A DNA stretch of 64,000 bases from Lepidodermella squamata (lineage: Eukaryota > Animalia > Gastrotricha), in the NCBI GenBank assembly GCA_047495785.1, contig JBLDXI010000007.1, positions 3,534,001 to 3,598,000 on the forward strand, read 5' to 3'. How positions within the stretch are numbered: the first letter of the stretch is position 1; every line of letters begins with the position of its first letter. The position numbers and the translations under genes are program-made. The notes beneath the pieces are model-generated. The model did no database searches. It was not told the DNA's origin and saw nothing but the letters and a program-made list of their open reading frames with translations. This document shows positions 1 through 60,786 of the stretch, in pieces.

Positions 1-2199
1 CCTCGGCGACTAGTTGGTCATCATAGGCAAGGTAGCACTTGCCTTTTTGACCCAGTTGAAGGGACAAATGTAGCCCTTTGAAATTGCTGAAGATGCCCAA
101 GCGCCCGTTTGAGTCATTTCCTAAATTTCCCTTTGACATTGAACTGAGAAAACTTAATAAGAAACTCACCAACTGTCGCGAGATTCTCGGAAACTCCAAA
201 TACAAAATATCCGAAAGAATTCGGATCGTATTTCGAGCTTACGTCCATTTCAGCTCGAAATCCGCCATCTGGCAATGCGTTCACGACAAAGGCTGAGCCG
301 TAATCGATTGCCGGGTACGAAGTTAATTGTAGCCCATTAACATCGATACGAGCTCCTGACTGCAAAGAGAGATTCGCCGAGCTAGACGTTGACGGGTTCA
401 GTATGTCGAATGAGTTTGCGACGAGATAATCAGGTGGAAATTCCCACATTTCGGGAAGTGATAATGATGCAACATCAGGCACTGGCAATTCACCCGAACC
501 AGCAGTTGTGGGCGCTAATGTTGATTCAGTTGTAGTAATACTGGTGGATGAGCTCGGTGAACGGGTTGTTGAAGATTGACTTGTGGTTGGGCTCGCGGTA
601 CTCGGACTAGTGATAACACCAGTCGTTGAAATACTCGTTATAGGGATGGTTGTTGTTGATTGACTAATTGAAGTTGATGGCTGATTGGTGGTTGTTGTCG
701 AGGAAGATAGACTCGTTGAGGTTGAGGATGTAGTAGTAGGTTGATTTGAAGTGGTGCTGGTTATTGGTGACGTAGGTGATGTCGAAGAAGTCGGCAGCGT
801 CGTAGTTGTAGTTGAGGGTGCCGTAGTCGTAGAAGATGAGGTCGAAGAGGGACTCGTAGACGGCGATGTGGACGTTGTTGGGGTGGTCGTTGTAGAAGTT
901 GACTGTGTCGTAGAAGTTGTAGTTGGGGTGGTTGTAACTTGGGATGTACTGGTTGATGCAGTCGTTGCAGCAGGCGTTGAAGCTGTTGAAGACGTTGCAG
1001 CACTTGAAGAAAGTTTCCATAGATTAGCAGACTTGAGTGTGAAGTTACCTGCATGTTCAGGGGGATAAATATATCACTCAACACAAGCTTCAGTTTTCAA
1101 TAATTCTAATTGAATTCAGCGGAGACATAAAATTATGTCCCCACTGTTGTCTTCCATTCCCAAGTGATTGACGCAATTCACGTGGCTTTCAGTTGGGAAG
1201 ATTTACTCTCCGTGCTAATGGTCGCCTCAGTCCATTCGTTCTACTTATATCTAAATTTATTGATTTTTGTCCAAAGTGTTTTGAAAATATGTTTTCAATG
1301 CGCTTGTTGGAAATGAGCCAAATTCAAAATTCACAGATAGAAGCCCGTCGAAGGGCTTGGTTACGATTAGAAACATCACTAGTAGAACTTGAAAATCACC
1401 GTTATTCCCGCAAAATCCAAGCAGTCGGATTTTACAGCTACCGCCCCCAGCGATTGCGCCTACCCCAGAAACGGAGACGTCGCTGAAGCAAACAGCCGTT
1501 GGCGTTGCCCCGTTAGCCGGCAACTGTGCCACACCGGGCTGATGAGGTTGCAACAGGAGTAAGTGGCGGCTGCCCAGTTGCTGGCAGTCCAACAGCACCT
1601 ACGCCGGCGTAGGTAAAGCCATTCTGTCCAAACTGCTGCCAAACATGTAGCCCAGTAACCCCAGAAGCGTTTACTCCACCGGGACAAAAGTTGGCATCTG
1701 AATAAAAGTAAGTATACTTAGGCTTGTAAATACTTTCTGTTCAATGAATCTTCACATACATTGGCTGACCGCTGTGGATGAAAGCGTTACTCCACTCCAA
1801 TGATAGCTACCACCGGACGGGTATATCGTGTCGTAATCGATTTCCAACCGGAAATCGGTTGTGCCGCTCGGCATTGCTGTGCTGTAGCTCACCCTACCAC
1901 CCATTGTCGCAGGAGTCTGGACAAGCAGGCCGGCTGACGACTGCGAACCGCTTGGCAGGTATACAGAGCTGAAAAAGGCGCCGGCGGATGTACTGACTGT
2001 TGAGCCGACAAAAGAGTTGCTTGAGATAAATGTTGGAGTTCCCGCGTAGAGATAAGGCAAGGGCAGTGAAGCAGTGTCTGGGCTTTGGCAATCCACTAAA
2101 TATATATTATGAATATTGGCTACAATTTGATACTCAGGCCCAATACTCACCATCGACGGCCATTATCACCGCTGAAAGGAGAACTGTAAGTACTTTCAT
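1..2199 (-). CDS. Family member A (3' part off-window): signal peptide + D1 + Thr/Ser mucin stalk + D2; probably continues into a pLGIC
   Basis: ATG at 2199 gives MKVLTVLLSAVIMAVD, then a GT-AG intron, then QSPDTASLPLPYLYAGTPTF...FRLEIDY (D1). A Thr/Ser stalk lies at ~490-1015, and D2 begins PVPDVASLSLPEMWEFPPDYLVANSFD. The layout matches the complete channel genes in the window; the channel part itself is not visible. Confidence 0.8.
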
Positions 2200-3950: not shown

Positions 3951-5151
3951 TTACTTGAGCTGCATATTCACCATGTTCACAAAGCTTTTATTGTTATCAC
4001 GTTAATCAGGTCACAAATACACAGTATTGCATCTATAGCTAATCGCAAGAATTTGCTTGAAAAGATTTAGGAATTTAGTTGTCTCCAGCAATGATTCCGT
4101 AAAATTCAGAGAGAGCGGGTCAAATTGAGCTATGTAGTGAACTTGTGTTGCTGATTCATAGCGCGATCACGCATGCCCGATAAACATGTGATTCCTTAGC
4201 CTGCCCTCAACCCCGACTTCAACTCCCAAAAAATTCGGAGGAACTCACTTTTGGTTCCATCATTTATGCGATTATTTCGTGAAACCACCGTGCAGCAATT
4301 CGAAACGATAATTCAATTAGGCATAATCATGGCTTATTAAGCGGCTTTTTTCATTCGTTTCTTAATGAGGGAGAAAAAAACGCTAATGAGCCCCTCACTA
4401 AACAAGTTAAGAGACAGCAATCCTGCCAGTTATATATGGGGTAGCAATAAATCAGCTAGTGCGCGCAAACATGGAAGTGTTGGCTTGAAACACACTGTAT
4501 ACTGTATCGCGTGACGTAGTGCCTTCGTTTTGAATTCAACTTTAGCACAGTTCACAGATAAATCTTGATTCAGAATTCGAAAGCTCTCTCAAAAGCTTGT
4601 CAATAGCTTTGATAGTTCTTACCCCTGGCGATTGGTTGTTGAGGAATCCTACTCGGCAGTTGCCTGTTTGTGGCTCATTAGTTATGGACAGCGGCATCGG
4701 TCGAAAATGTGAGTGGAGCTAGCAGATAGTGGGCGAATTGACTATCTTACTTCTCAGCGCTGCTGTGTAGATTTCAACTTGAAAGCTATTTTGAATAAAT
4801 GTTTCATGAAATGTGTTAAACTTTGCAATTGAAAGCTGAAAGATTTTTTATTATTCCCGACAGAAATTGCATGATTGCTAGTACATCATAGCTGCAGAGA
4901 ATCGAGGGGAAACACATGTTCTATTCTCAATCCTAGAGGTCATGGATTATTTAGCAGTAATAGGGTATTACGTGTGAATCAAAAGTGATGTCTCAAAAGT
5001 CACGAGTGCTGCGTAAAAAGCGATTTGGATGTTTACGAAGTTGTGCATGAGACCGAAATAGCAGCCCTCAAACAGCGTATATTTCCATCATTACAGACGA
5101 GTTCTAATCTGAAAGCTAAAAGCTTCGAGCACAGCTTTTGAAATTTTGAAG

Positions 5152-8100
5152 ATGATAACAAAAGCTGTTTTATTGATGGTGTTGCTGGTTGATATCGGTA
5201 ACGATCCCAATGAACGTGCATATTAAACCTTTTGATTTTCTCTTAAAGCCCACAGCCAGTCTCCAGACGTCGCAACCTTTCCGCTGCCTTACCTGTACGC
5301 TGGAACTCCGACATACAGATCGGCAATATCTTTCATCGGTTCATCGGTGTCTACAGGATATTTCAGTACTTTTGAAGCAGATCAAACTGGCGCTGGAATA
5401 TTGCTTCAAGATTTGGCTTACAACGGCGGGCGCATCCACTCTGGTACGGCTATTCCATCAGGCGATAGCAACTTTCGGGTCGAAGTTGATTACGACGCTA
5501 GCTATTCCAGTACAAGTCTGGCAATGTCAATGATTTCCTTCTCGTCAACATCTTACGGCTACGTCGTTGACGATCCGAGTAAAATTAATTCTTCATCTCA
5601 ATTCGATAGATATTTTCAACGTGTGTACAGACCCCTGTGACTATACAATCGACCCGACGGGTATTTCAGGGCTGTCGATTTGGCAGGAGCTAAAGCCGAA
5701 TGGAAAAACGTTCGCCTCAATGACTAGCCTTGGCAGTTCACCTTACCCGAAGATAGCAACATCAGCCACCGCCTGCGGGAGCTCCACTCTTTTTACAGCA
5801 TCAAGCTCAAGCTCGAGTTACCGATTAATCATTCAAGTGTACAACGACAAAGTAACTGTTGCTATGGCTCCGTTGCCAGCGAATGGGACCACAGAGACAT
5901 TGCTTTGTTTTGATGGGATAACGGCTACTTCAGCGAGCTCCAATGCAGGCAGTGGGAGTGCGAAGGTGAGATGGTTAGGCTTATGTAACAACGTCGGTGA
6001 GTTGCCACAATATTCCCCAGATTGATGAACCGAGAAAAAACGAATAGGAACCGTAACGGTTAAGAGGTTCAATTTTTGGAAATTGGCTACCAGTGTTTCG
6101 ACTGCTGCCGCATCTACGACTACAACACCTGTGACATCGACTACGGCCACTACTTCACCTACGTCAAGTTCAACTTCTCCAACTTCATCATCAACTACCA
6201 CCCCTACAACCTCTAGAACCCCTTCGACCACAACCCCGACGCCAAGTACCTCTCAGTCAACCTCTACAGCCACAACAGTCACCACAACGACATCTCCGTC
6301 AACATCCAAGGCAGCAACTACATCAACGCCCACGACATCAGCTCTCTCTTCAACTACGACAAGAGGCCACTTAACACCTGAGATCGATTCTTCAACGCTT
6401 CCCTTACCCTACACGTGGGCGGGTACGCCGATGTACCTAGCACAGAATTCATTCGATTTCACGAACTCGTCAATCGATGCGACGGCGTCGCTTTCCGTTC
6501 AAGCCGGAGCGATAATCGATTCAAGCGGATTGAAGCTCGACTCGTACCCTTTGATCGATTTCGGCTCTGCAGTGATTAGCCAGTCTCTGCCCTCCAATCT
6601 AAAGGCGTTGAGGATTGAGCTTGATCTTGCTTCGACTTTCGGTTCTCAAAACTATGGCTACTTTGTAATTGGTATTGGAAGTTCTTCTCCTGTTGCTGGT
6701 GAGTTGAATATCAAGTTGTTCATTCGAAAATTCACTTCAATATTCAGGAATCGACCCAAGCGGCCGGACAACATTGCTCCGTAACTACGATGGAATAATG
6801 TTATCACTTCAACTTGGTAATAATGGATCGTTGTATCTCTCATACAACACAACAGCTACCACTACAAGCCTAGTCGTACCTTTCCAGTACTCGCAACAAT
6901 CCAGCCCGATAACCAATATTTCGACGAACGGAACTGCGGCAATTCGCCTGATTGTCCAAGCTGTGGTAGATAAGCTGACAGTTGCTCTATCATCCTTAAC
7001 CTCTGGATGGCGAGACGTTTTGTTGGCCGATGCTCCCATAGCTGGTTTCAGTTCGTATCAACTAAGCAATAGTAGTGCTAAAATTAGATATTTCGGGATC
7101 AACGGTTCAAATGCTGATGTCACTGTGAAGGATACTCATGTTTGGGCCCTGCAAACATCCCCATCAACCCCGCTACCCACAACAACTGAGAAACCAAGAA
7201 CCTATGATTTCACTGCCAACACAACAGATTTCCCGATCCCGAATCTGATCGAAGGAAATATTTGCTCCTTCATTACAATTGAAGATCTCAAAACGTGTAA
7301 ATACATCAACTCGAATTACAGGTGGGGTCGTTATATTTCAACAATTTTTGAGAATTGAGTCCATTTTCAGGGCTCCAAATTATGGAACAAAGATTTATAT
7401 TCGACTTGACTTCGAAAACTTGATTGATATTAATGCGAAATCCCGAGAAATTCAAGCTTCTGCTAAGCTGACCTTACAATGGGTTGTAACTAACTGTCCT
7501 AGAGCTCCTTCAGTCAATGAAGCTGATCGAATCTACACCGTCAGTCGAAATGAAGTCTGGTCGCCTGTTCTACGCTTTGCCAACACATCCGTGGACAAGT
7601 TTATGGAGATCGATTACAAGGAGAAAGTTCATATAGTTTACTATCCAACTACCCCGAATCGCACGCTATTCTTTCATTGGATAATCTACGGCGTTTTCAA
7701 TTCAAGATGCGTTATGAAGCTGAGAAAGTTCCCATTCGACTCGCAAGTTTGCGATTTCACCTTCGTATTGGATGAATCTGATAAATTTCTGAGTTTTGCT
7801 GGTGCGAAGCTAGTGTTTGACAGGGATTTTGATACCGAGCTGTGGAAGCTTGTCAAATCAAGTACAGTCTATGGGACAACAGCATCGCTGCTCCGGCTAA
7901 ACGGATCGTCTAGCTATGCCACTTTCTACGTCGGTTTTTCGCGCGAACCCATGCCGTATCTAGTCAACAGCATGGCTCCCTGCTGGATCATAATGATACT
8001 TGTCTTCTCTTCACTTTTGTTCCAACCTGACGTTCCCGATCGACCGGTATTTGATGGAACGTTGCTACTGAGTATTATTGTGATCCAGTCAGACGTGCTT

Positions 8101-8364
8101 GATCAGATCCCTGAAACATCAGAATCTGTACTCATGGCTGAGTATATTCTGATTTTATGCGGATTGACAGCATTCATGGCTTTGTACGAGACGGCAATAC
8201 TTGCTGCATCGACATGCTATCCCGGTTTTATGCTTGGGGAATACAAGATCAAGATTTTACGTAGAGCTTGCAGCTATGCTCGAGCTCTGGACATTGCTTT
8301 CTTCTTGCTAAGCTTCGATTTGTTTGCCGCTGTCAACATTCACGCATCGGTTGTAGCTTTTTGA
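5152..8364 (+). CDS. Family member B: signal + D1 + mucin stalk (~93 aa) + D2 + Cys-loop ligand-gated ion channel
   Basis: MITKAVLLMVLLVDI, intron, AHSQSPDVATFPLPYLYAG. Stalk ~6087-6365. D2 starts PEIDSSTLPLPYTWAGTPMY. After a 49-nt intron (7322-7370), the last exon has WSPVLRFAN, Cys-loop CVMKLRKFPFDSQVC (C-x13-C), four hydrophobic helices, and M2 PDRPVFDGTLLLSIIV...IPETSE. Confidence 0.9.
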
Positions 8365-11651: not shown

Positions 11652-11683
11652 ATCATGAAGTCACGTTACATATCTTTTTGCAG

Positions 11684-13349
11684 TTATAACCACGGGCATT
11701 ACATAATGAAAAATTTCTACTTATGGAAACTGTCGAGCAGTAGCGCGACTTCGACCTCAACGCCTACGCCTTCAACGACAACTCAATCTTCTTCAAGTTC
11801 CACCACGACGATACCAACTTCATCAATCACAACAACGACGACTGCTTCAACCTCAAGTACAACGAAAAGATCAACAACGCCTTCGACAACTTCGACATCA
11901 CTATCTACTACTTCTACTACGACAGCTCCAACATCGACAACTTCAACGACGTCGAAAAGCTCAGCTGGAATATCACCTCTTGGAACATCACCAGCAGGCA
12001 CTTCAAGTACATCACTACAATCAACAGTAGCAACGAGCTTATCGACTAATGCTCCTTCAACGTCAGCTTCTGCGGTGGAAAAATTACCTACATCAACAAT
12101 AGCACTCTCAACATCGAGGATCGCAACCCCCTCATCGTCACTATCGATCACAACAGCTCCAACAGAGGAAAGAACATACAATTTCGCGTCAAATAGCACA
12201 AGCTTCCCGATCCCCGATCTCATCGAGGGCAATTACATCCCCTTAATTGCTGTCTCAGACCTAATGCCTTGTATGTACATTAACCCAAATATCAGGTTAG
12301 TACGTTCATCTAATGCAGAAAACGCGTATATCAATTGTTTTAGATCTCCCTATCCTGGAACAAAAATCTATGTGACGCTCGAATTTTATCGTCTAATCGA
12401 TATAAACGCAAAAGCCAGGGAGATATCTGTGGGCGGAAGCTTAACCATACAATGGGCGGTGAAAAATTGTCCCCAAGAAGTAACAGCCCCGAATGTCGAT
12501 GAAGCTGAACGTGTGTATACAATCGATAGGGCTCAGGTTTGGGTGCCCTATCTTCGATTCGCAAACACTTCAACCGACATCTATCTGCAAGAAAACTTTC
12601 GGGAGCAAGTTCAAATCGTCTACTACCCAACTTCGCCGAATAGAACGCTGTTTTTCCACTGGCTGAGGTTTGGCATCCTAACAGCTCAGTGTCAATTGAA
12701 ATTGAGAAAATTCCCATTTGACTCGCAGCGATGTGATTTCACGTTTGTTTTCGAGGAGTCAACTCGATTTCTTGAAGTTGCGGGTTCCGTACTTGAATTT
12801 GGCGAGTCATTCGAAAGCGAGATGTGGCGGCTCGATTCTACAGCATCGAAATTTGGTGTAACAAAATCGCTGCTTCGTAAGAATCAAACGTCGAGCTTTT
12901 TTCGATTCACAGTTGATTTTTCACGAAAGCCGACGCCATATTTGATCAACTTACTGGGTCCAGGTCTTCTCCTTGGAATGTTAACTTTTGCTTCACTGAT
13001 TTTCCAGCCTGATAATTCTGATCGAGCATCTTTCTCTGTTTGCTTGCTGTTGAGTATGATTGTTCTTCAATCAGGCGTTATGAATCAAATTCCCGAGACG
13101 TCGGAGCGTGTTTTGCTTGCTGAGTATATCTTAGTGCTGTGTGGGTTGTCCGGGATGATAACTTTGTATCAGGCCGTCTTAGTTGCTCTGATCTATCATT
13201 ACCCTGAAGCTATGTGCCAGAAAATGGAATTGTTATCGAAGAAAACTCGAACGAGCTGCGCTCGAGCCATGGACTTGATGGCCTTCTTTCTAGCCGTTGA
13301 CGTATTTTTAACACTCAATGTTTACGCTGTAGTTGTTGCGTTCGAATAG
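11684..13349 (+). CDS. Family member C: D1 tail + mucin stalk joined directly to a Cys-loop channel (no D2); 5' exons not found
   Basis: Splice acceptor ttttgcag at 11683, then KNFYLWKL (D1 end motif), ~147 aa Thr/Ser, and ERTYNFASNSTSFPIPDLIEG. An in-frame 48-nt intron lies at 12296-12343. Cys-loop CQLKLRKFPFDSQRC and four TM helices follow, with an intact stop. Confidence 0.8.
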
Positions 13350-14603: not shown

Positions 14604-17076
14604 ATGATTTTCTACTTGCCTTTCTTGGTCCTAACCTCCTGGCATCTAAGTAATTGTACACTTATAAATGTGTAACAACTTCTAATCATCTGCCTGTTGT
14701 CATTTTAGGTTTGGCGCTGGATCCTGATCCGGACATCGAATCTCTGTCATTGCCCTACCTGTGGGAAGGGTCTCCCGTGTACGACCCAACAAATTCTTTC
14801 GACGCCGTCAATGCTTCGATTTCGCAGTCTTACGCGTTCAATACGTGGGTCATTGCTCGGAATACAAGTTTGGGCTTCCAAATGAATGACAACAGCATCA
14901 GCACAACTGGCCGTATCACCAATGCTAACGTATTCTGGAAATTATGCTTGATTTTTTGAAACTAATCAAGCTTTTCAAGGTTGTTCCCAGTGGGAGTAAC
15001 AGCTTACGGATGGAAATCGACTTGATGGTGACGTATCCAATTATTGCAACAGTCAATGGATGGTTTGGCATATCATTTTCGACGACTCTTGTTTTGCATA
15101 GATTTTACGTAAATCGAAATTGTCAATATTGAAAAATTATCCTAACAGCACGCACTTCGAGCCCGACGTATTGCTATACAATGATGACCAATATGGCTGG
15201 CCCTTCTATCTGGCTGGAGATTAAAACAGGCGGAAGGCTGCACGTTACTATGGGTACCAACAGCTCAATCCCGCTGTATCCCACCATCGCGACTTCTTCC
15301 CCATCCTGTGGCAGCAGCTTCGTACTCAAATCATCTGGAACTAGCAACCTGCGCCTGATCGTACAATTTTACGGCGATACAGTCGAGGTGCGGCCTTTGA
15401 AAACATTAACAATCAAATTAACAGGGAATCAATTTTCTTAAGGCTGCAGTTGCCGCTCTCAGTGAAACGAACGCCTCCGTGAGCTCAATTTGTTTCACTG
15501 GCATGGCGGCTACGGGATTCGGGGCTTTGCTCAATAGCGGGAAAGTGAAGGCTCGAATTTCCGCGGAATGTGGCGAAACAGGTTAGTTCCTACATGTAAC
15601 CAATAAGACAAGACATCTTATGAATGGGGAGAAGTTACGTATAAAACATTTCGATGCTTCTTGTAGAAGTTAAAGATAAACCAGAAGTTCATTGATAATA
15701 CCTGAACCAGGCTAAAGGCTATCAGGGTTGCTGAGAAACTAAGAAATTAACAGAAGACAAAAGTGCGCCAGAAAAAGCCCAGTATTCTCGCAAAAGTTAA
15801 CAAGCCGACCACCTAAGTCCTATTCTCTCTCGTTGCCGTTCAAATGATGATTTTGAAGATCTACATCTTAAACCTCTTCGACAGCTGATTTTTGAAATAT
15901 TTTTTTTCATCGTGTCTCACAGGGTACACTATTATTAGGAAGATGTATTTATGGAGATTGCCCGCAAGTCAATCGACAGCTACATCAACAGCAACTACTA
16001 GTACAGCTTCGGCAGCTACTTCGACCACAATCAGAACAAGTCAAGCCACATCAGTTTCCAGCATGATGACTGAAACGACTGGCACAAGTTCGACAACTGC
16101 TACGAAGTTCACGAGCTCAACAGGTTCTACAAGTGCTACTAGTTCAACTACTGAGTCGAGTTCTACGAGATCAACGGCCGGGGATATTACTTCATCATCT
16201 GAAATGCAACCAACTTCAACATTGTCGTCAACCAGTACAGGCGAAGTTTCATCTGCAACTCCAACGTTGATCGGAACTTCAGGTGTTAACGAGAAGGTAA
16301 TAACCACATCTCCAGGTTTGTCCTTTTCTCGTATAATGTTGATATATTTTAGCGTTCTTATTCTGTCTTCAGTTGACTTCAACAGCTCTCTGGACATATA
16401 TTTCGTAATTGATAGCTCAAGATCGATACCCATGACACGCTTGCCGCGTTTGAAAGCGCTATTATTCATGTTGACGCGGGAACTCATGCTTGCTTCATCA
16501 GTTCGAGTGAGTTCTGTTTGCTCTTTCAATATTTGAATAAACCTATTATAATTCTTTGCCCGGTAGCTTGGAGTCATCCTATTCGGAGGCCGAACAGCTG
16601 GACAAACAATTTTAAAGCTTTCAGAGAGTCTGTATCGATTTCATGCAGTAGAAGCTATTGAATCTTTCTACAACACAACCGTTTACTTTGAAGGCCAGGG
16701 TGATGTTTTAAACCCTCTCAGCCGGCTGATAGACCCGAATGCATTCTCGTCGAGAGGTAAAAATAATTGCATGTTTTAGGAGCTACATTGATGATGAGCC
16801 TTTCTTATAGATGGATCCCGGCCGAATGCGATTCAAGTCGTGGTGATTTTTTCAGCATCCTCCTCCTGTGACGTCGCAGCTCTGGAGCAACAAATCGGTT
16901 TATTGAAATCAGTTGGCAGACGAGTTATTTTGATAGGCCTGCCATCAAATAGACGGCGTTGGAAGCAGTTATCCAGATTTAATGCCAATGGATTTCCAGT
17001 GTTGAAGGTTGATTCTTGGCTAGATCTGCAATCCTATTTCACGCCAATTTTTCAAGAATTGCACATGATTTCATGA
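14604..17076 (+). CDS. Family member D: signal + D1 + mucin stalk + von Willebrand factor A domain; no channel (predicted secreted)
   Basis: MIFYLPFLVLTSWHL, intron, LALDPDPDIESLSLPYLWEGSPVYDPTNSFD. Stalk ~15960-16310. VWA beta1/MIDAS LDIYFVIDSSRSI (DxSxS), then LGVILFG and RPNAIQVVVIFS. Stop at 17076 with no TM helix. Confidence 0.75.
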
Positions 17077-18762: not shown

Positions 18763-21700
18763 CTAAAAGACCACCAGCGATGCATAGATGTTTAGTACCA
18801 GGAAAGCATCGATGCTAATGCAGAATATTGAAACATCCATAGCTCGAGCATAGCTGATTCGCGCCTTGAAGAAAGCGAATCTTCCGTCATTATCTAGAAG
18901 GTAAGTGTATCTGCATGTAGCTGTGAACATTATTGCAGCGTATAGGGTAATCATCGAACACAGCCCGCAAAGAATCAGAATATACTCAGCCATGAGAACA
19001 GATTCCGAGGTTTCGGGAATCTTATCTAAAACTTGGGATTGGATTACAATCATGCTGAGAAGGAGGGTCCCAGAGAATGCCGGACGGTCTGGGCAGTCGG
19101 GATCAAAAAGCAGTGACCCGAAGACCAGGGTCAGTATAATGGCACACGGTGCCATGTTGTTGATGAGGTACGGCGCTGGCTCACGGGAGAAGCCAACAGT
19201 GAAAATGGCATAGCCAGCCGTTCCATTCTTTCGCAACGGCGACTTGGTAACGCCGTGTTTGTTGGACGCAGCATCGAATTTCCATAGTTCGCTATCGAAC
19301 GAGCCATCGAAGGCGAATCGCGAGCCGCCAAAGAACAGAAATTTATCAGCCTCGTCGAGCAGAAACGTGAAATCACATCGCTGCGTGTCGAACGGGAATT
19401 TTCTCAGCTTCAATATGCATTTCGATGTCATCATGCCGAGTCGTATCCAATGAAAAAACAGCGTGCGATTCGGGCTCGTTGGGTAGTAAGCTACCTGGAC
19501 TTGTTCCTTCCAGAACATTCCATTCTCCATGTACAGGTCGGATGTTGTGTTGGCGAATCGGATGCTCGGAACCCATACATCACTGCGCTTGACTGTGTAA
19601 ACACGATCGACTTCGTTGACATTGGGCGCCGTCACTTCTTTCGGACAGCCAGTGACCGCCCATTGTACAAGCAGTTGCGTCCCAGCAGCTATCTCACGAG
19701 CATTAGCATCAATGTCGAACAATTCTTTGAACTCCAAGGTAATGAAAATCTGAGTCCCAACGGCCGGAGATCTGGAAGAGACAAATTTACAGAAAAATCT
19801 GTATCGAAGCAAATTGCTATTACTTGACTCGGGAATTGATAAATTTGCAAGTTGTTAGGTCGCCCATTTTTATTAGCGGAACGAGATTACCGTCAATCAA
19901 GTTTGGAATATTGAAACTTGAAGTATTTGAGCTGAAATCGTAAGTTCTTGCAGGAACTGTGGTTGGCAGAGCTGTAGTTGAAAGCGAGGATTTCAGTTCC
20001 CAGATCTTAAGGCTTCGAACTGTTACATCAGCGCTGGATCCGTTTATTCCGTACAGTTGTATCTTTGCCATACCACTCGCTAGTTGATTCGCGCTGAAAC
20101 CAGGTACACTGACATCGCTGAGTAGAATCGTGCTCGTGGCATTGTTACCAATAGGGGCGATGGCGACGGTGATTTTGTCGCTCAAACTCTGAATTACCAG
20201 TTTGAAATTAGCTACTCTCGATCCATCGAATATGTTTAGAATTGGGCTAATAGAATTAACAAAATAATTCAGAGGGACTGTTTCGCTCGTGCTTGTCGGA
20301 ACTGCTTCATAAGATAGGTAAGCACTGCCGCCTTGACCGAGCTGAAGACATATATGAGCGCCGTCGACATTGCTGAAACTACCCATGTGCCCACTGGAAT
20401 CATTAGCTTGAAAAGAACAAGAGCTACAGAATGATGATGATGATGATAGCTCTGATTTTGTTACCTACCTACAGATGCGGGTTGACTGGTCATTCCTATC
20501 ACGAAATAACCTGAGGAATCTGGCTTGTAATCTGAAGTAACTTCCATCTCGATTCGAAAGCCGTCGGAACTGAGACTTGAAGGCAGGTTTGCGCCGACAG
20601 TGGCTGATCCGTAATCGATCGATGGATAATCGTCCAGTTTTAACCCGGTCGCGTCTAAAACAGCGCCACCCTGTAGAGAAACATATCCGCCCTCCGAGCT
20701 GAATGAGTTATTCGGTAGATAAGCAGGGATACCAGAGTGCATGTAAGGTAGCGCAAGTAAATTAAAATCAGGCTGAAGTGATGAGCTGCTCTGCTGTTGG
20801 GTAGTTGATGCTTGTCGTGACGTTGTAGTTGGATTCAGGGTTGTCGAGATTGATGATGCAGCGATACTTTTTCCTTGAGATGACAGCGGAGCTGTCGAAG
20901 GCGTAATAGTAGTGCTCGAACTTAGAGCGACCGAAGTTGTTGTTGTGGTGGTTAACATTGAAGTTGCTGACGATGTTATTGCCGGGCTAGAGCTCGTCGA
21001 AGTTGGGGTAGTCGATGATGCAGTTGTTGAACTCGATGGAGCGGTCGCTGTCGTAGTCATACTAGTGGTTGCCGTCGATGTTGCTGGTGTCGTTGTTGGA
21101 GTTATTAACGGAATCGTAGTAGTTGAGGTCAATGCAGGAGTTGTAGTCGTGGTAGTAGTCGATGTTAATGGAATTGTTGTCGTTGCGCTTGGACTTGGTG
21201 TGGCCGAAGTTGCTGTTGTCGGGGTCGACGTTACAGTTGTGGACGATGTTGTTGCCGTGCTGGAGCTTGTCGAAGTTGGCGTAGTTGATTTTGTAGTAGT
21301 TGAAGTCGATGGAGCGGTCGTAGTCGTGCTAGATGTCGATGTTGATTGAGTTGTTGTCGTTGTACTTGTACTTGAGCTGAAAAAAAAGAAATTCAAGCTT
21401 CCAAGACAAGAGCAAAAATATCCTATAGAGAAGCAATGGAATTTTATCACCGCCATGCTATACGTGATTTTAGTTCGGCATCAATTTTTCCGTCATCTGT
21501 TATTATGCTGCCTAAATACTTGAAGGAAGAAACTTTTCTAACTTTTGTCCAATCAGTCGCAGTTCATAATTTTTTGTTTCTTCTTCCTTCCCGCCTATGA
21601 TTATGTACTGAGTTTTTTCCACGTTGATTCGTAAAATATGGTAATATTTATTCGATAAAAACCCACAATTGGCCATCATAAAAATATTGACTGACCTCGT

Positions 21701-22948
21701 CGATGAAGCTCCATTTAAGCATGATCCTGGAGGTGGAAAAGTCGGTACAGTGGTCGTTCCCGATGTGAGGCCAAAAAAGATAACCCTTCGCACCAGAACA
21801 TCTCCAATGCCCCCTAGTGATCCCATTATACTAAGCAAGGCAGTGGGCGATCCCATCACAGCCGTGCCCATCGACGGGACAGGTAGGTCAATGAAACAGC
21901 TGCAAGTTTCCATGGTTCCATTAGCGGATAGTGGCGAAACAGCGACACTAGCAAGGTCATTTGCGACTTGAATGAAAAGCCGAAACTTGCTCGAGCCTGA
22001 GCCGTCTAAGAAACGAGAGCTGCCACACGCAGGGATCGATGTGGCATTCGGAGGATTGCCCGGAATCGGTTGGTATGTCGAATTTCTCGTCTGGTATGTA
22101 GAATACGCTAACCCAGATGGTTGCACCTGAAAGGCTGTGAAAAGGCCTCTCGGCATTTTAAATAGGTCAATGTTCGTCGCTGCGGCCGATCTCTCTAGAA
22201 ATAGGGTGAATAGAAGAATGAATCACTGTATTTTCATGAAACACTTACTATAAGATCCGATATCTTCCGCGATGTTCACAGTGAACCAGGCCATCGAGTT
22301 GTTTGTCGGATACGTAATTTCCGCGTCGATTTCAAGTCGAAAGTTGGCAGGTGAACATATTGTGAGCCCCTTTGAACATCTCGGATTTAGGCATGTTTAC
22401 ATCAGTTACAAGGTCAAGGGTGACGAATAAAAAGCGGCTTTTTATAACGTGAATGGCAGAAACAAACTACTTTTTACCTGTCACCTTTCATCTCGAATTG
22501 ATGTACACAAGCCTAAAATCCGACTTATTAAAACGACATGTAACCCTGATGAAGAAAGGGACCTAGCTACTTAATCAACAGCCGAAAACGTACCCCCGGA
22601 GAGTTGATGTGACCGTGAACAATTTGGGGCGATATTTGCGCCAGTTGGTACCCTGAGCCTGGGATTTCAACCACCGCACTGCTCGTGGAGAAGCCGCCGG
22701 AGGTGAATTGGTTCGATCCATTGTAGTAATCAAAAGAATTGTCGCTATCGAAACACGCGGCACCCTGAAAGCCGTACGGTAGCGGGTAAGAAGCTTCGTC
22801 TGGGGTCGGGTCACCAGCAAGTACTGCGGAAGAAATAGTAATACAACATAGTTGGACAAAACTGAAACATTTATACGCCAAACCTAAAGATACCCAGATT
22901 CTTCTTACCTATTTTGCAGATAAAAAATATATTCAGCAACCGTAACAT
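18763..22948 (-). CDS. Family member E: signal + D1 + mucin stalk (~200 aa) + D2 + Cys-loop channel
   Basis: MLRLLNIFFICKI, intron, VLAGDPTPDEASYPLPYGFQG. Stalk ~20775-21378. D2 starts QPDFNLLALPYMHSGIPAY. Cys-loop CILKLRKFPFDTQRC; M2 PDRPAFSGTLLLSMIV. Confidence 0.9.
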
Positions 22949-25775: not shown

Positions 25776-27633
25776 TCAAAATGCGACAATAAGAGCATAG
25801 ACATTCAGGGTTATGAGTACATCAAAACAGATTAGGAAAGCTGAGACATCCATGGCTCGAGCATAACTGACAGCTGCGAATTTGATCGAAATCGCCTTTT
25901 CAGCCATTAGAATCTTCTCGTATCTAGTAGTAGCAGCTACCATAATCGCTTCGTAAAACACGAGTGCGCCGGTCAGGCCACATAAAATTAAAATATACTC
26001 AGCCATCAGGACAGATTCAGATGTTTCTGGGATGCTTTTCAAAACATCAGATTGCGTAACGATCAGGCTCAGCAGCAGAGTACCGGTAAACGCTGGCCGA
26101 TCTGGAACATCAGGCTGGAATAGCAAGGACCCGAAAACGAGGAGCGTTATGATGGCACACGGGGCCATGTTGTTGATCAAATAAGGAGCCGGCTCTCGAG
26201 AGAATCCTACTGTGAAGCTTGCATAACCAGAAGTACTATTCTTCCTCAGCAGGGATGAGGTTATACCGTATGTCGAAGAAGCCGCGTCAAGCTTCCACAA
26301 CTCACTCTCAAACGATCTGTCAAAGGTCAACCGGGTTCCGCCGAAAGTTAAGAACTTCTCATATTCGTCCAGTAAGAACGTGAAATCACACCGCTGCGAG
26401 TCGAATGGAAATTTTCGGAGTTTCAGGATGCATTTCGCTGTTATAACGCCGAATCTCATCCAATGAAAAAACAGAGTTCTATTCGGACTCGTAGGGTAGT
26501 AAGCTATCTGGACTTGTTCTTTCCATGTACTACTCTCTAGGTACAGATCCACAGTTGTATTAGCGAATCTAATACCAGGTACCCAAACTTCATCTCTATT
26601 GACCGTGTAAACCCGGTCAGCTTCATTCACGTCAGGAGCGGTAACCTCCACTGGGCAATTACGCACCGCCCATTGGACAAGGATTACGGCACCGGCTGAG
26701 ATCTCTTGAGCCTGCGCGTTAATATCTACCAAGGTTTCAAACTCCAGGGTCATGAAAATTTTGGTCCCGAAGTCTGGAGATTTGTTCTTCGTACCCAGTG
26801 ACTTACAGGTAGTCAAGTCACTCAGGGTTAGCAAAGGAAACATGCTGCCATCGATCAAATTTGGAATCTTGAATTCAGTCGTATTTGTTTCGAAGTCATA
26901 CGTCCTCGGCGTTGATGGAGTTGGCTGCAGTGCCCAAACTCGCGTGTTTTTCACAGTGACGTCAGCATTGTACCCATTAACGCCGTAAATTTGAATCGTC
27001 GCCAGTCCACTAGCTAGTTGATTTGCAGCCAAACCAGGTACATTGGCATTTGAAAGTAGGACAGCTGCTGTTGTTTCGTTGAATCCAGGCAGAGGCGTGA
27101 CAGCAGCCTAATACGTGAAAATCGTTAGCGATCTAAATTGGCATGAACCTGGAAAAAGCACTTACAGTGACTTTGTCGTTGGCAACCTGAACTAAGAGTC
27201 GGAAATCAGACACGACAACACCACTTGAGTTAGTATCCCTTCGAGCTCTGTAATGGAAAAGATTCGAAATGACGTTCGACTTTCTGCTATAGGCGAAAGG
27301 CGGAGCTCGGGCGGTCGACGCGATTTTAGCGTCGTATGCTACGAACAATCTTCCGCCTATGCCAACTTGAAGTGATAAATGAAGACCGTTGTAGTTGTTG
27401 AATAAGCTCTTCCTCCCATATGCGTCAAAATCTGATAGACGAATCTTACGAAAAATCATATAAATTCACCAAAACATACCGACAAGAGTTTGTGAGTTTG
27501 AAATTTCGAAAATTATGTAACTGAAAGAGTTAGGATCAAATTGGGTGCTGAAGTCGGTTTCAAAGCGAAAAGCAGCAGGGCTTTGCCCCTTCGGTAGCGA
27601 ATTCTCAATTTCCACCGCGCCAAAATCGTTCGT
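25776..27633 (-). pseudogene. Member F': 5'-truncated duplicate of F (partial D2 + intact channel frame)
   Basis: Identical to 37340-39197. It breaks inside the D2 exon (..TNDFGAVEIEN) where the EnSpm end begins, so it has no signal peptide, D1 or stalk. Confidence 0.85.
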
Positions 27634-31000: not shown

Positions 31001-31065
31001 AAGGGACAGGCGCATTTTGAGCAAGTAAAAGACTTTTCTTGTTTATAAGGCTGATATGAAGCCAT
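28045..31065 (-). CDS. EnSpm/CACTA-type transposase (multi-exon)
   Basis: N-terminal CxxC..H zinc finger, then FLFFDEFVSVAALG..KQKL, LGDNLAQHQLIGMLESFSANLPCSKC, PAHDLLEG and KLHNLVHYPQQIRDYGP..SSLGFER. These motifs are in the order typical of animal EnSpm-like transposases. Confidence 0.85.
29952..30034. repeat. (ATTTTA)n microsatellite in transposase intron
   Basis: About 13 tandem hexamers. Confidence 0.95.
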
Positions 31066-37228: not shown

Positions 37229-39197
37229 GCTCATAGGGCATGTTAATATAATGATGATAGACGATGATAATTACAACATTGTTACTACACGCACGTGTTC
37301 CGCTAATTTCTTAAATTTGATTCTTGATCAAAACCTGTTTCAAAATGCGACAATAAGAGCATAGACATTCAGGGTTATGAGTACATCAAAACAGATTAGG
37401 AAAGCTGAGACATCCATGGCTCGAGCATAACTGACAGCTGCGAATTTGATCGAAATCGCCTTTTCAGCCATTAGAATCTTCTCGTATCTAGTAGTAGCAG
37501 CTACCATAATCGCTTCGTAAAACACGAGTGCGCCGGTCAGGCCACATAAAATTAAAATATACTCAGCCATCAGGACAGATTCAGATGTTTCTGGGATGCT
37601 TTTCAAAACATCAGATTGCGTAACGATCAGGCTCAGCAGCAGAGTACCGGTAAACGCTGGCCGATCTGGAACATCAGGCTGGAATAGCAAGGACCCGAAA
37701 ACGAGGAGCGTTATGATGGCACACGGGGCCATGTTGTTGATCAAATAAGGAGCCGGCTCTCGAGAGAATCCTACTGTGAAGCTTGCATAACCAGAAGTAC
37801 TATTCTTCCTCAGCAGGGATGAGGTTATACCGTATGTCGAAGAAGCCGCGTCAAGCTTCCACAACTCACTCTCAAACGATCTGTCAAAGGTCAACCGGGT
37901 TCCGCCGAAAGTTAAGAACTTCTCATATTCGTCCAGTAAGAACGTGAAATCACACCGCTGCGAGTCGAATGGAAATTTTCGGAGTTTCAGGATGCATTTC
38001 GCTGTTATAACGCCGAATCTCATCCAATGAAAAAACAGAGTTCTATTCGGACTCGTAGGGTAGTAAGCTATCTGGACTTGTTCTTTCCATGTACTACTCT
38101 CTAGGTACAGATCCACAGTTGTATTAGCGAATCTAATACCAGGTACCCAAACTTCATCTCTATTGACCGTGTAAACCCGGTCAGCTTCATTCACGTCAGG
38201 AGCGGTAACCTCCACTGGGCAATTACGCACCGCCCATTGGACAAGGATTACGGCACCGGCTGAGATCTCTTGAGCCTGCGCGTTAATATCTACCAAGGTT
38301 TCAAACTCCAGGGTCATGAAAATTTTGGTCCCGAAGTCTGGAGATTTGTTCTTCGTACCCAGTGACTTACAGGTAGTCAAGTCACTCAGGGTTAGCAAAG
38401 GAAACATGCTGCCATCGATCAAATTTGGAATCTTGAATTCAGTCGTATTTGTTTCGAAGTCATACGTCCTCGGCGTTGATGGAGTTGGCTGCAGTGCCCA
38501 AACTCGCGTGTTTTTCACAGTGACGTCAGCATTGTACCCATTAACGCCGTAAATTTGAATCGTCGCCAGTCCACTAGCTAGTTGATTTGCAGCCAAACCA
38601 GGTACATTGGCATTTGAAAGTAGGACAGCTGCTGTTGTTTCGTTGAATCCAGGCAGAGGCGTGACAGCAGCCTAATACGTGAAAATCGTTAGCGATCTAA
38701 ATTGGCATGAACCTGGAAAAAGCACTTACAGTGACTTTGTCGTTGGCAACCTGAACTAAGAGTCGGAAATCAGACACGACAACACCACTTGAGTTAGTAT
38801 CCCTTCGAGCTCTGTAATGGAAAAGATTCGAAATGACGTTCGACTTTCTGCTATAGGCGAAAGGCGGAGCTCGGGCGGTCGACGCGATTTTAGCGTCGTA
38901 TGCTACGAACAATCTTCCGCCTATGCCAACTTGAAGTGATAAATGAAGACCGTTGTAGTTGTTGAATAAGCTCTTCCTCCCATATGCGTCAAAATCTGAT
39001 AGACGAATCTTACGAAAAATCATATAAATTCACCAAAACATACCGACAAGAGTTTGTGAGTTTGAAATTTCGAAAATTATGTAACTGAAAGAGTTAGGAT
39101 CAAATTGGGTGCTGAAGTCGGTTTCAAAGCGAAAAGCAGCAGGGCTTTGCCCCTTCGGTAGCGAATTCTCAATTTCCACCGCGCCAAAATCGTTCGT
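35489..39197. repeat. 3709-bp direct segmental duplication, copy 2
   Basis: Starts on the base after the EnSpm TIR (..TTACAGTG|CATGCACTGCC) and matches 23925-27633. Confidence 0.97.
36415..36993. mobile_element. hAT-family MITE, duplicate copy
   Basis: Same TIRs and GTTTTGGA TSD as 24851-25429. Confidence 0.92.
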
Positions 39198-41097
39198 TTG
39201 GAAAGAATTCAGCTGAATGCCTGCTGGCGTGACTTCGGCCCCAGGTTGCGTAGATATAACCCCAGATGCTTTGATATTTGAGTTGACAGCGTCGAATGAG
39301 TTAGAAGCGAGATAGACAGGATAACCCGACCAAAGCTTCGGCAGGCTCAGCGAAGCTATGTCGGGCTCTGGGATCAACAGATCATGCGTGGTCGATGAGA
39401 TTGAATCCAAGGTAGAATGGCTGGTTGCCGATAATGTAGATTCGATCGTTGACGAAGTAATGCTAGTTGCTGCTAGGCGAGTAGTTGTGGTCGTCGCTGT
39501 CGAAGATGAACTCATTGCTGGAGTTGATGTTGAATTCATTGCAGTCGTCGGTGTTGTGATGCTAGATGGATTGGTTGCAAGCGTCGTAGCTGTTTGCGTT
39601 GAAGAAATCGTAGTTGAAGAAGCATCTAGGCTTGATGTCGTAATAGGGACAGAACTTTTAGTAGGGGCTACAGTTGTAGCTGAAGACGTGCTAGTTATGG
39701 CTGTTGAAACTGTTGTGGAGGTTAGGCCCACAGTTGGACCCGAGGTTGCTGTAGTTGTCGATGACGAAGTTATCGCTGGTGTGGTGCTTGAAGTCGAACT
39801 CGAAGTTGCAGTCGAAGTTGTTGTAGTAGTAGGGGTAGTCGTCGAGGCTTCCGTCGAGGTTGTACTTGAGCTGGTTGTCGAGCTCTCAGTCGTTGTCGGG
39901 GTGCTTGTTGTAGTTGGTGTTGTCGTTGTTGTCGATGTCGTAGGTGTTGTGGTAGTTGTAGTATCAGCTGTCGTAGTTGAAGTACTGGTACTGGTGCTAG
40001 TCGTAGTCGTCGAGCTGGAAAGCAATCAAATAAGCAAAGCCCTCCTCAATTCTCAATCAGACCTTGAAGTCGTAGCTGCATAATTGACGCAGGTACCAGC
40101 TGGTGGGAAGGCTGTTGCACTAGAATTGCCAGGAGTCAGGCCAAAGAAGTAGGTTCGTGTCGCCAGAATGTTGCTAACGTTGCCCAAACTCGCGAACAAA
40201 GATGCCGTGCTGTATTGCGCCGCCATCACGTTAGTCGCCATGTTCGGAACAGGTATGTTGTCAAAACAAGTACAGGTCTCTGTCGTACCAGCTGCAGGTA
40301 GCATGGCTACCGCTAAACTAGCCATGTCGTTGACGACTTGAACGAAAAGACGAAAGTTGCTGATCCCAGAGCTATTGAGAAACGCAGCATTGCCGCAAGA
40401 TGCAACCGACGTGTAGTTCCACGGATTCCCAGGAAACGGCTGATTTGTTGTTGGAGCTGTTGTGTAGTAAGTTGCGTACACTAATCCACCGGGTTTCATG
40501 CGAAAGAAGAATTGCAGGCCTCTGAAGTTCCGGCAGTGAGAATATTCGGTCGTTACGCCACCAGTTGCTGCAAATTAAAAAATATAGCCGCTAAGTTGAG
40601 AACCAAACACTGGCAATGAAACTCTTACACCAATGAACGCCCTGGTCACTAATGGTAACAGCGAGCCAGGAAAATCCTGTTGCGATAGGATAAGTGGCTT
40701 CGATGTCGATCTCCATCCGAAAATTCGAGCTTGGGCATATGTAGCCCTGAGAAAATGAGTTAGAAGATTATGGGACTATAGCGGGTAACCAACATACCCA
40801 GCCAGAATAAATGAAGCCGTCTAGGATAAGGGGTGATATGCGAGCCAATTGGAATCCATTTGCCAGCTTCACAGCATCACTGGTGCCTGTATCGTAAGCG
40901 TTCGAACGGTAAGTTGTTGATGTATTCACAAGATCAAACGAGTTATTCTGGTCATAGCAAGGCGTCCCTTGGTAGCCCTGTGGCAGTGGATAGGAGGCTA
41001 CATCTGGTGTAGGTATTGTAGCTTCGAGTAGCCTCAGGAGGGCCGTTATCAGAAGACCCGATAGCAAGCAAGTAAAAACACGATCACAGTTTGCCAT
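37340..41097 (-). CDS. Family member F: signal + D1 + mucin stalk (~210 aa) + D2 + Cys-loop channel
   Basis: MANCDRVFTCLLSGLLITALLRLLEATIPTPDVASYPLPQGYQG. Stalk ~39380-40017. D2 starts PEPDIASLSLPKLWSGYPVY. Cys-loop CILKLRKFPFDSQRC; M2 PDRPAFTGTLLLSLIV. Confidence 0.9.
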
Positions 41098-57109: not shown

Positions 57110-60100
57110 CTAAAATACAACAATAGCTGCATAGAGATTGATGACTAGAAATATGTCGAAGTATATGAAGAAAGCAGCCATGTCAATCGCCCTAGCGTAG
57201 CAAATCTTCTTGCAAAGCCCAATTGTCAAAAATCTCGTCATCAATTGCGGATACTTGACAGACGCTGCGAACATGATTGCCTCATACAGGGTCATGAGCC
57301 CAGTCAACCCGGACAAAATCAGCATATACTCTGCCATGAGGACTGATTCTGTTGTTTCAGGGATGAGATCCAAAACATCGGATTGAAGGACGATGATACT
57401 CAGCAAAAGTGTCCCAGAGAAAGCGGCTCGGTCTGGAACATCCGGCTGGAAGATCAATGAGCCGAAAACTAGCGTGATGATCATCGAACAGGGCGCTAAG
57501 CTGTTGATCAAGTAAGGAACCGGTTGGCGGGCAAATGTGACGGTGAATGTTGCGAAACTCGAGGTGCCGTTTTTCCGCAATAAGGACGTAGTGATACCGT
57601 AGACTGATCGCTGATTTTCCAACGTCCACAGCTCGTCGTCGAGAGAGTCTAAAAAAGTCAATTGGACTCCTGCGAAATTGACAAATTTGTTCGATTCATC
57701 CAGGGCGAATGAAAAATCGCATTGTTGTGTGTCGAAGGGGAATTTTCGCAGTTTCAGCCAGCATTGCGACTTGAAGTAGCCGTATCGCATCCAGTGGAAA
57801 AACAGCGTGCGATTTGGGGTTGTTGGGTAGAAACCCACGAAAATTTGTTCCTTGAAGCCGTTTTCCATGTAAACATCTGTCGTAGCATTCGTGAATCGCA
57901 TGCTTGGCACCCAAAGGTCGTGCCTACTGACCGTGTAGACACGATCAGCTTCGTTCACGTCAGGGGCTGTAGTCTCCCGTGGGCAGGCGGTAACAATCCA
58001 CCGAACTATTAAGCAGCCGGATAAGGATATTTCCCGCGCTTTTGCATCAATTGTATTCAGCCGATCAACCTCGAGGCTCAGGTATATTTTGGTACCAAAA
58101 GCTGGAGACCTACAAATTGCAAAACAGGCGTTAGTTGAGGCTTGGAACATGGAAATTGTACTTTCTGTTCCATAAGCGAAGTAAGATACCTGTTTATTCC
58201 CACTACTTACCTGTTTTCTGTATTAAGTGCCTCGCATGTGTTTAGATCCTCGATTTTCACTAGTGGCCGGATGTTTCCATCGATCAAATACGGAATCGAG
58301 AAATCAGAAGCGTTAGACGCAAAATCATAGCTTCTCGGGCCCGTAGGTATTGGTGTCGTCGATTCAGAGGGCTCAAGGCTCCATACGCGAACGTTTTTCA
58401 CGGTCGCATCTCCACTAGTACCACCCAATCCGTACAGTTGAATGCTAGCATTTCCACTAGATAACTGATTCCCGTTTAAACCGGATACGTTCACATTGTC
58501 TAAGGCAATAACTGATACTGTATCGCCGTAGCCTGGTGAAGGAACGAGAGCGACCTGAACAAGATTGAACTAGTGATTGAATTTCATTTCACACATTTGA
58601 AAGCATACTGTGACTTGATCATTCACGTTTTGAAGAATGACCCGGAAATCGGCTGTACCAGAGCCGTTGAAGATGCTACTGAGCGAATCACTCGCGTAGT
58701 TGTAGTTGAGAGGGATGGTTTTGTTTGATGGGGTAGCATCATAGGCAAGGTACAACTTCCCATCCCCCGCCAGTTGAAGCGACAAATGGAGGCCCTCGTA
58801 GTTGGTCAGTGAATCAGGGCCCACTGCCGACCGTTTCTTACGACCAGCTGTTGCAGTAGCTGAGAGAAAGTTTAGATGCTTTATAGCCTTAAATCCGATA
58901 ACTTACTAATTGTCCCAATCGATTTCGTGATTGCGAGAACCAGGTAGCCTGATGAGCCGTTCACTATATTGAATTTCGAGCTTACCTCGATTTCAGCTCG
59001 AATAGGAACTAGGCCAAAGTTGGCCGGCAGCGGTTCAACCATCCTAGCAGACCCGAGATCTACGTTCGGGTAGGAGTTCAGCACAAGACCTGTATTGTCG
59101 AGACGAGCTCCATATCCAGTGACAAATTTAGCCGTAGCGTTCATCGACGTATTTGAGTCGAACGATAGATGGCTCAAGTATGTTGGCTGTCCAGACCACA
59201 TGTAAGGCAAAGGCAGAGATTGGGTGTCTGGGGTTGAAACCAAATCGCCCAATGGCTTTGCAGTGGTTGAGGTAGTCTGCTGAGTAGTTGAAGCGGTCGT
59301 AGAGCTCGTACTGGTGGTCGTTGGGGTTGTTGTCGTAGTAACTGGAGTCGTAACAACTGTCGTTGTTGGGGTAGTGGTGGTGCTCGTGGTTGTTGTTGAG
59401 CTTGTCGAAACAGTTGGCGTCTTGGTCGTAGTTGCAGTAGACGTAGTAGTGCTGGTTTTCGTGGTGGATGTCGTAGTTGGGGTTGGCGTTGATGTTGTAC
59501 TCGTTGATGTACTTGGTGTGGTGCTGGTCGAGCTTGTCGTAGGCGAAGTTGTTGTACTCGGGATTGGGGTTGTTGAAGGGGTTGTCGTTGTTGGGGTTGT
59601 GGTACTAGTAGAAGTACTCGATACTGTAGTGGTAGGGGTACTGGTCGATGTGCTGGTTGTTGTAGTTGTTGGGGTCGTAGTCGAAGTTGTAGTTGGCGCA
59701 GTGGTTGTCGATGTTGGAGTCGTACTTGTAGTAGTTGTAGGAGTAGGAGTCGTAGTCGTAGTTGTTGTAGTAGTAGTGGTAGAAGTCGTGGCAGTTGTGG
59801 TGCTTGTGCTGTTCGACAATCTCCAGAAATAGAACTTGTAGATGTAAGCTGTCGCTCTCCCAATAGTGGCGTGGGCATTGATGCGTAACTTCACAGTTCC
59901 AGACGCCATGTCCGCATTTATTCCAGTTATATCCACGTTATCAACGCAAACTTGGGCCTGGGTTCCAAATGGCGCCATCGCTACAGTCAGCCTTTCCCCA
60001 TAAACTTGCATGATGAGGCGAAATCTAGCCGACCCTGACGCACCGAAGAGCCCTGTCCCACAGCCAACTGACGAAGTGGCCACTATAGGCGAGCAAGGAA

Positions 60101-60786
60101 GACGGCATTTGCAGTTATTGCAAATGCCCGATGGCGATGACAAAACTTTCATCCGCCCATTATTCATCATTTCTTGGAACACCGCGAAGCCCTTGAATGT
60201 GTCCATAATATCCCATCTCCCATCGCCCCCGGCACCTGTTTTAGAATCATCTGCAGCTTGAAAATTCTAGGCAAATGAACGTACTGTAATCAGGCGACCA
60301 ACTTGAGAAAAACGCAACAAGATGGGCGGGATTTGCGCTAGAGTAGACTGTATCATAATCCACTCTGAAATCCATTTCCGCTCGCCAGTTTTGTGTATTC
60401 GTCGCAAAATACTGAAAATTAATGAAATACTGAGCTCTGACAGCTAAAATATTGAATGCTCACTTCATTAGACGCGATTCGTCCGTAATCTACGCTGCTG
60501 CTCATGCTGGCCAGCCTGTAACTATCGGATAGCTGAGTGCAGTCGTAGTTCATAGCGATTGTAACACTGCTTGCAATGCTCGAGTTAGCCTCGTCAAATG
60601 ACATTCCTGGAACGTAGGTTGTAGGACCCGAGAACATATAGGGCAGTGGAAACGAAGCAGTATCCGGGTTTGGGTTTAGCCCATCTGATAAAAAACAAAT
60701 TTGAATGATTCACTTGTTTTGAAGGATACAAACTTACGGGCAATTTGAACTAGTAACAGAAATGTAATCATATCCCAACAGCGCAT
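57110..60786 (-). CDS. Family member G: signal + D1 + mucin stalk (~185 aa) + D2 + Cys-loop channel
   Basis: MRCWDMITFLLLVQIA, intron, HGLNPNPDTASFPLPYMFSGPTTY. Stalk ~59262-59820. D2 starts PDTQSLPLPYMWSGQPTY. Cys-loop CWLKLRKFPFDTQQC; M2 PDRAAFSGTLLLSIIV. Confidence 0.9.

Follow-up and report, generated by a model that had tools for sequence, protein, structure and literature searches.

The described systems closest in layout to the gene analysed here are pentameric channels with extra domains placed N-terminal to the canonical extracellular domain. In the bacterial channel DeCLIC, two β-rich jelly-roll lobes influence gating kinetics, and N-terminal domains of this kind are stated not to have been observed in any eukaryotic homologue (PMC9897478). 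The sole animal exception to a prokaryote-only distribution of such extra domains that we found in the literature is a lobster family of 66 Cys-loop receptors that carry C-type lectin, pentraxin or LDLa domains, a type which its authors considered to occur only in lobster and related crustaceans (Polinski et al. 2021, PMC8221624). Here we analyse gene B (5152-8364, + strand), which lies in a 64,000-nucleotide stretch from the gastrotrich Lepidodermella squamata (assembly GCA_047495785.1, contig JBLDXI010000007.1, positions 3,534,001 to 3,598,000), termed below the window, to which all coordinates refer. The product encoded by gene B comprises, in order, a signal peptide, a domain copy D1, a 97-residue Thr/Ser/Pro stalk, a second domain copy D2, a linker of ~50 residues and a complete Cys-loop channel, an order common to those paralogs in the window that are seen whole (D, F and G). 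The D domain is probably a very divergent, lineage-restricted member of the concanavalin A (ConA)-like β-sandwich superfamily, to which the L-type lectins are nearest, and provides the heads of a Cys-loop channel subunit.

Each subunit of DeCLIC and of other prokaryotic pentameric channels has two β-rich jelly-roll lobes in front of its canonical extracellular domain, as gene B probably has; DeCLIC differs in being bacterial, in having no mucin stalk and in carrying a Pro-loop instead of a Cys-loop. A DeCLIC-type origin of the heads was considered and rejected for want of a structural match, DeCLIC being absent from the 50 best structural neighbours of either D2 half model (see below). The lobster chimeras resemble gene B in being animal Cys-loop subunits with extra extracellular recognition domains and in forming a greatly expanded family, but their heads belong to recognised Pfam families (CLECT, PF00354 and PF00057), whereas the gene B head is uncatalogued and occurs as two copies parted by a mucin stalk. 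Among the exon pieces searched, no match to the C-type lectin, pentraxin or LDLa Pfam domains was found; pentraxin is itself a ConA-like sandwich. Gene B thus has a different head, apparently of known fold, in a layout already known in outline.

The fold of the D domain was addressed with AlphaFold2 models at the exon level, the two halves of D2 being folded separately, each with its paralog alignment, because no copy in the window holds the whole domain in one exon: every copy is divided, at an equivalent position, by a phase-1 intron, and no intron-free copy of a whole domain is present in the window. The N-half model has a predicted local distance difference test score (pLDDT) of 74.7 and a predicted template-modelling score (pTM) of 0.60; the values for the C-half model are 64.9 and 0.63. 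Seven of the top eight structural neighbours of the N-half are FRIL, ERGIC-53 (two entries), Emp47p, VIP36, an Entamoeba legume-lectin-like domain and pea lectin; the list also includes GH16 and, lower down, other jelly-roll modules such as carbohydrate-binding modules, MAM and Eph domains. The C-half neighbours are likewise ConA-like, with galectins, FRIL and legume lectins, GH16, GH32 C-domains, PL7 and PL14 lyases, pentraxin, ERGIC-53 and the thrombospondin C-terminal domain; in the Atlas search its best matches are GH16 fragments (TM 0.52). Foldseek against the PDB gave no significant match, Erythrina lectins heading the N-half list at E about 4. All of these fold-search scores are modest, and the ConA-like lectin/glucanase superfamily predominates among the neighbours of both halves.

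The two independently built half models divide the same lectin chains between them. On FRIL (1qmo) the N-half maps onto chain A 1-99 and the C-half onto chain E 132-247; on ERGIC-53 the ranges are 43-142 and 142-277 (1r1z) or 42-134 and 134-271 (8jp4); and on the Entamoeba protein (5zbt) they are 22-109 and 114-233. We consider this complementary mapping to be good evidence that a single jelly roll of L-type-lectin-like form, about 245 residues long, is made by the two exons together, and on the strength of it we rejected the idea of a separate domain for each exon. An earlier reading made from the sequence alone (below, the sequence-only reading) had proposed an all-β sandwich of 200-230 residues, possibly of ConA or laminin-G type and so perhaps a lectin, to be checked by structure prediction and search. 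That check, as run on the D2 half models, returned mainly ConA-like neighbours, nearly all of them lectins or glucanases, in support of the ConA-like sandwich; the nearest relatives are, however, legume- and ERGIC-53-type lectins rather than laminin G, and the length is slightly greater than was estimated. Several strand patterns (SFxF...LQ.GA....G.L.L at the start, the hRLxVQ...D..TVA pair and GFSxxxx before the last strands) also resemble those of legume lectins, a likeness that served as a lead, not as a test.

The kinship of D1 and D2 is clear from their sequences. D1 contains PDVATFPLPYLYAGTPTY...SF, FRVEVDYDASY, YRLIIQVYNDKVTVAMAPL, GSGSAKVRWLG and VKRFNFWKL, to which LPLPYTWAGTPMY..NSFD, LRIELDLASTF, IRLIVQAVVDKLTVALSSL, SSAKIRYFG and VKDTHVWAL correspond in D2, so that each motif quoted in the sequence-only reading was found in both domains and in its expected place. 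The claimed homology extends far beyond chance in both halves, as judged by tblastn (D2 N-half against D1 N-half, E=3e-5; D1 C-half against D2 C-half, E=2e-5) and by hhalign profile-profile comparison of D1 with D2 copies (N-halves 99.1%, E=1e-18; C-halves 98.5%, E=4e-15; N-half against C-half as control, 0.1%). The intron place and phase shared by D1 and D2 fit duplication of an exon pair. The two copies differ in that two Cys residues, invariant in the four D1 C-halves aligned, are both absent from D2, which is rich in N-glycosylation sites. The span of 5249-7190 previously assigned to the pair also holds well, 5249 being the first base of exon 2 and 7190 lying just beyond the end of D2, and the count of at least 11 copies agrees with the 11 N-halves in the window (two each in A, B, D, F and G, and one in C), to which a partial, duplicated C-half in E is added.

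The frames from which these proteins are read switch at intervals of a few hundred bases, across short GT..AG introns (49-52 nt), giving the window a eukaryotic character; gene B has five such introns, read from sequence, of which introns 1-4 are in phase 1. Variants, i.e. differences between the stretch and alternative contigs of a DNA run holding it, number 13 synonymous and 2 non-synonymous within D1 and D2 (seven, all synonymous, in the domain part of exon 2; 5 synonymous and 1 non-synonymous in exon 3), an excess which supports both the inferred frames and purifying selection. Transcript evidence comes from a run with the behaviour of RNA, X1, in which a contig passes from ...AATTACAG straight into the first bases of exon 6, joining 7321 to 7371 in frame. 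Loose ends occur in run contigs at 7183, 7321 and 7368. In paralog F, a single open frame (38596-38255) runs from the final strands of D2 through the linker into the first strand of the channel, and fusion of the domain to the channel is there independent of splicing. D2 is thus fused to the channel in gene B, by the spliced X1 contig, and in paralog F, by the open frame. Over 5100-6147 (+), X1 gives no contig across the signal peptide, D1 and the start of the stalk, a gap for which low depth, divergence or an alternative 5' end may be responsible.

The channel of gene B matches Neur_chan_LBD (PF02931, E=2.4e-13), and its open reading frame (ORF) shows the C-x13-C loop with FPFD and the four hydrophobic helices of a Cys-loop channel. 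Only about 30 residues separate membrane helices 3 and 4 (within 7371-8364, +), as in bacterial relatives, and a search of the word-indexed protein collection yielded no relatives for this channel. The paralog channels match PF02931 at E values from 1e-6 to 1e-10, whereas matches to PF02932 are weak. Neur_chan_LBD comes after each complete two-domain copy in the window and after the D2-type copy in D, E/F and G; gene A leaves the window at its start before any channel could be visible. The exon 5 linker recurs in paralogs D, F and G and in an ORF beginning at 11655.

At the sequence level the family is nearly solitary. Pfam gave no match, even at E<=10, for 19 exon pieces of the D1 and D2 copies (alignments A1 and A2), and neither Lectin_legB (PF00139) nor Lectin_leg-like (PF03388) was matched at that threshold by the 19 exon-sized pieces; profile searches of PDB sequences (A1, A2, A7 and A9) gave chance matches only, such as RelE and neuromedin, and no lectin. 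The earlier failure to match the domain to a named family is therefore borne out by the empty Pfam and PDB-profile searches, and on the two points which that reading had named as decisive, no confident Pfam match emerged and D1 and D2 proved clearly homologous. When the N-half profile was run in a full HMMER scan against 1.84 billion representative proteins, it found five, four being low-complexity repeats; the one real match (P0001) is an 89-residue fragment encoded on a 1338-bp JGI metagenome contig (L001). The C-half profile found no match in the word-indexed protein collection, and two metagenome locus scans (alignments A4 and A5) found no relative. Language-model look-alikes, a mixture of DUFs with some ConA-like proteins (calreticulin, DUF1961), were not used as evidence. 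As far as the searched collections go, these near-empty results point to a family confined to this organism and its close relatives. On the metagenome contig (2-647), the D-like exon, which matches just the second part of the D N-half, follows directly on an exon whose F5/8-type-C (discoidin) match (E=3e-6) falls slightly short of the Pfam cut-off, and this suggests a further domain combination in a related organism.

The D domain shares with the L-type lectins (FRIL, pea lectin, ERGIC-53/LMAN1, VIP36 and Emp47p) a size of ~240 residues and probably an all-β jelly roll, but has no sequence similarity to them detectable by HMMER or Pfam, and it is extracellular, mucin-stalked and channel-fused whereas they are seed lectins or secretory-pathway cargo receptors. 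Alignments A1 and A2, inspected by eye with motif-level placement, show no invariant Asp, Asn or acidic residues at the expected L-type calcium and sugar positions. The canonical calcium and sugar site thus appears not to have been kept, and any ligand is probably bound differently.

Several observations weigh against our assignment of the D domain as an L-type-like head. The models are of half domains built from 8-11 paralogous sequences and cover D2 only, with the fold of D1 following from its homology to D2; no sequence method, whether Pfam or PDB profiles, ties the domain to L-type lectins; the X1 contigs cover D2 and the channel but no D1; and the proposed loss of the calcium and sugar site was judged by eye, since the fold searches give ranges and not residue pairs. 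Such points leave room for the view that the lectin likeness is an artefact of low-confidence half models, the true structure being a new β-rich fold or two small one-exon domains. We consider this very improbable, because on each of the same four lectin entries the independent half models cover adjacent halves that do not overlap and that meet within a few residues, because a C-half in the window is always preceded by an N-half (with the sole exception of the duplication-truncated copy E), and because the total of ~245 residues fits an L-type lectin domain.

On another view the module would be a jelly roll but no lectin: it would serve in protein binding or adhesion (as do the MAM, Eph ligand-binding and thrombospondin-type modules) or as a passive spacer, and would neither bind carbohydrate nor affect gating. 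Modules of these kinds do occur among the structural neighbours, and the canonical sugar site seems to be missing. Yet true L-type lectins make up seven of the eight best neighbours of the N-half, sugar binding at non-canonical sites is known from many ConA-like modules, and strong purifying selection speaks against a mere spacer; we therefore regard this alternative as unlikely, and the lectin-like head remains our preferred reading.

With the lectin-like head as the starting point, the signal peptide in front and the channel extracellular domain behind would place both heads outside the cell, and with only ~50 residues between D2 and the strand that opens the ligand-binding domain, the pentamer should be crowned by five D2 heads. 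An ancient tandem duplication would have given rise to D1 and D2. In the assembled channel, the five D2 heads would lie beside the ligand-binding ring and the five D1 heads, on flexible stalks, would reach far above the membrane; the mucin-like stalk would be O-glycosylated. By analogy, the heads may serve outside the cell to recognise, or adhere to, a glycan or other macromolecule. They might modulate gating, in the manner of the N-terminal lobes of DeCLIC and the amino-terminal domains of glutamate receptors, or might hold the channel at a particular surface. A bolder proposal, which we regard as quite unlikely, is that the genes constitute a large family of ionotropic 'pattern' receptors private to this animal lineage. 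In place of a small transmitter, glycans or other macromolecules caught by lectin-fold heads on long mucin stalks would open or tune these Cys-loop channels. If true, contact with surfaces or microbes would be read out directly as an electrical signal, by a system that evolved independently of the bacterial N-terminal-domain channels and the lobster chimeras.

Gene B and its paralogs would represent a second, unrelated animal solution to adding N-terminal domains to such channels, employing an uncatalogued L-type-lectin-like head that is duplicated, mucin-stalked, maintained by purifying selection and expanded into a family of genes. Should the heads gate the channel or position it, they would introduce a new coupling of macromolecular recognition to fast ion flux. 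The results also indicate that a whole domain family can escape Pfam and a 1.84-billion-protein HMMER scan yet be assignable to a known fold.

Table 1. Features of gene B and its paralogs, with coordinates in the window.
Feature	Coordinates	Strand	Basis
Exon 1: start codon and hydrophobic signal peptide (MITKAVLLMVLLVDI), ending in phase 1	5152..5197	+	read from sequence
Gene B intron 1, GT..AG, 51 nt	5198-5248	+	
Exon 2: D1 N-half (PDxxxFPLPYxYAGTPxY ... FRVEVDYD)	5249..5578	+	
Exon 3: D1 C-half (YRLIIQVYNDKVTVAMAPL, SAKVRWLG)	5631..5996	+	
Exon 4, beginning: final D1 strand (TVTVKRFNFWKL)	6048..6085	+	
Exon 4, middle: mucin-like stalk, 97 residues, Thr+Ser+Pro = 79%	6086..6376	+	
Exon 4, remainder: D2 N-half	6377..6698	+	AlphaFold2 model m9aeb196221cd, pLDDT 74.7
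Exon 5, first part: D2 C-half, six N-x-S/T sites	6748..7166	+	AlphaFold2 model m1b7311a6b303, pLDDT 64.9
Exon 5, remainder: conserved linker (PRTYDF...IPNLIEGN...DLKTC) into channel	7167..7321	+	
Exon 6: Cys-loop channel (ligand-binding domain, Cys-loop with FPFD, four membrane helices, very short M3-M4 loop)	7371..8364	+	
Paralog A: D1 (2087-1404), mucin stalk, D2 N-half (485-168); gene leaves window at its start	168..2087	-	
Paralog C: single D1-type copy, then mucin stretch and VWA-like exons (16384-17073)	14729..15399	+	
Paralog D: D1 (22803-21749), stalk, D2 (20772-19985), then channel ORF 18766-19812	19985..22803	-	
Paralog E: partial D2 C-half, then channel ORF 25779-27032	27151..27435	-	
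Paralog F: D1 (41007-40119), long stalk, D2 (39365-38400)	38255..41007	-	
Paralog G: D1 (60667-59808), stalk, D2 (59231-58360), then channel ORF 57113-58150	58360..60667	-	

The other members of the family in the window (Table 1) vary on the plan of gene B. Their stalks can be much longer, extending to well over 200 residues in F and G compared with the 97 of gene B. Gene C (14729-17073) has extra introns in its D1-type copy and, where the others have the channel, VWA-like exons, pieces of which match Pfam VWA over profile positions 1-32 and 98-171 (E=0.02 and 0.008, below cut-off). The D module is thus portable, being found with VWA-like exons in gene C and beside the F5/8-type-C exon on the related metagenome contig.

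In an uninterrupted ORF of 564 residues (11655-13349, +), what is left of the last D strand (FYLWKL) stands at the start and is followed by a mucin stretch, then the conserved linker and finally a full Cys-loop channel (Neur_chan_LBD, E=1.7e-10), without D2. No D1 is detectable within 1.3 kb upstream, and a search of the word-indexed proteins with the channel part of this ORF came back empty. The ORF may represent a family member that has been truncated, or one whose first exons are more distant. In gene D, between D1 and the stalk (21460-21800, -), the translation resembles the C-terminal part of a long interspersed nuclear element (LINE) reverse transcriptase (FKYLGSIITDDGKIDAELKSRIA), which is probably an intron insertion or the mark of a disrupted copy.

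Paralog E is a recent duplicate of part of F, its D2 C-half being identical in protein sequence to that of F at 38715-38999. The duplicated pair consists of the D2 C-half (27151-27435 and 38715-38999, -) and channel ORFs at 25779-27032 and 37343-38596, which are of equal length (418 residues) and equal Pfam score. The two segments flank ORFs at 28048-31065 for which Pfam gave no match, an arrangement that fits the duplication around a transposon noted in the sequence-only reading. Near the end of the window (63316-63966, -), a fatty-acid desaturase ORF (E=3e-10) is the sole recognisably conserved housekeeping-type gene seen in the stretch.
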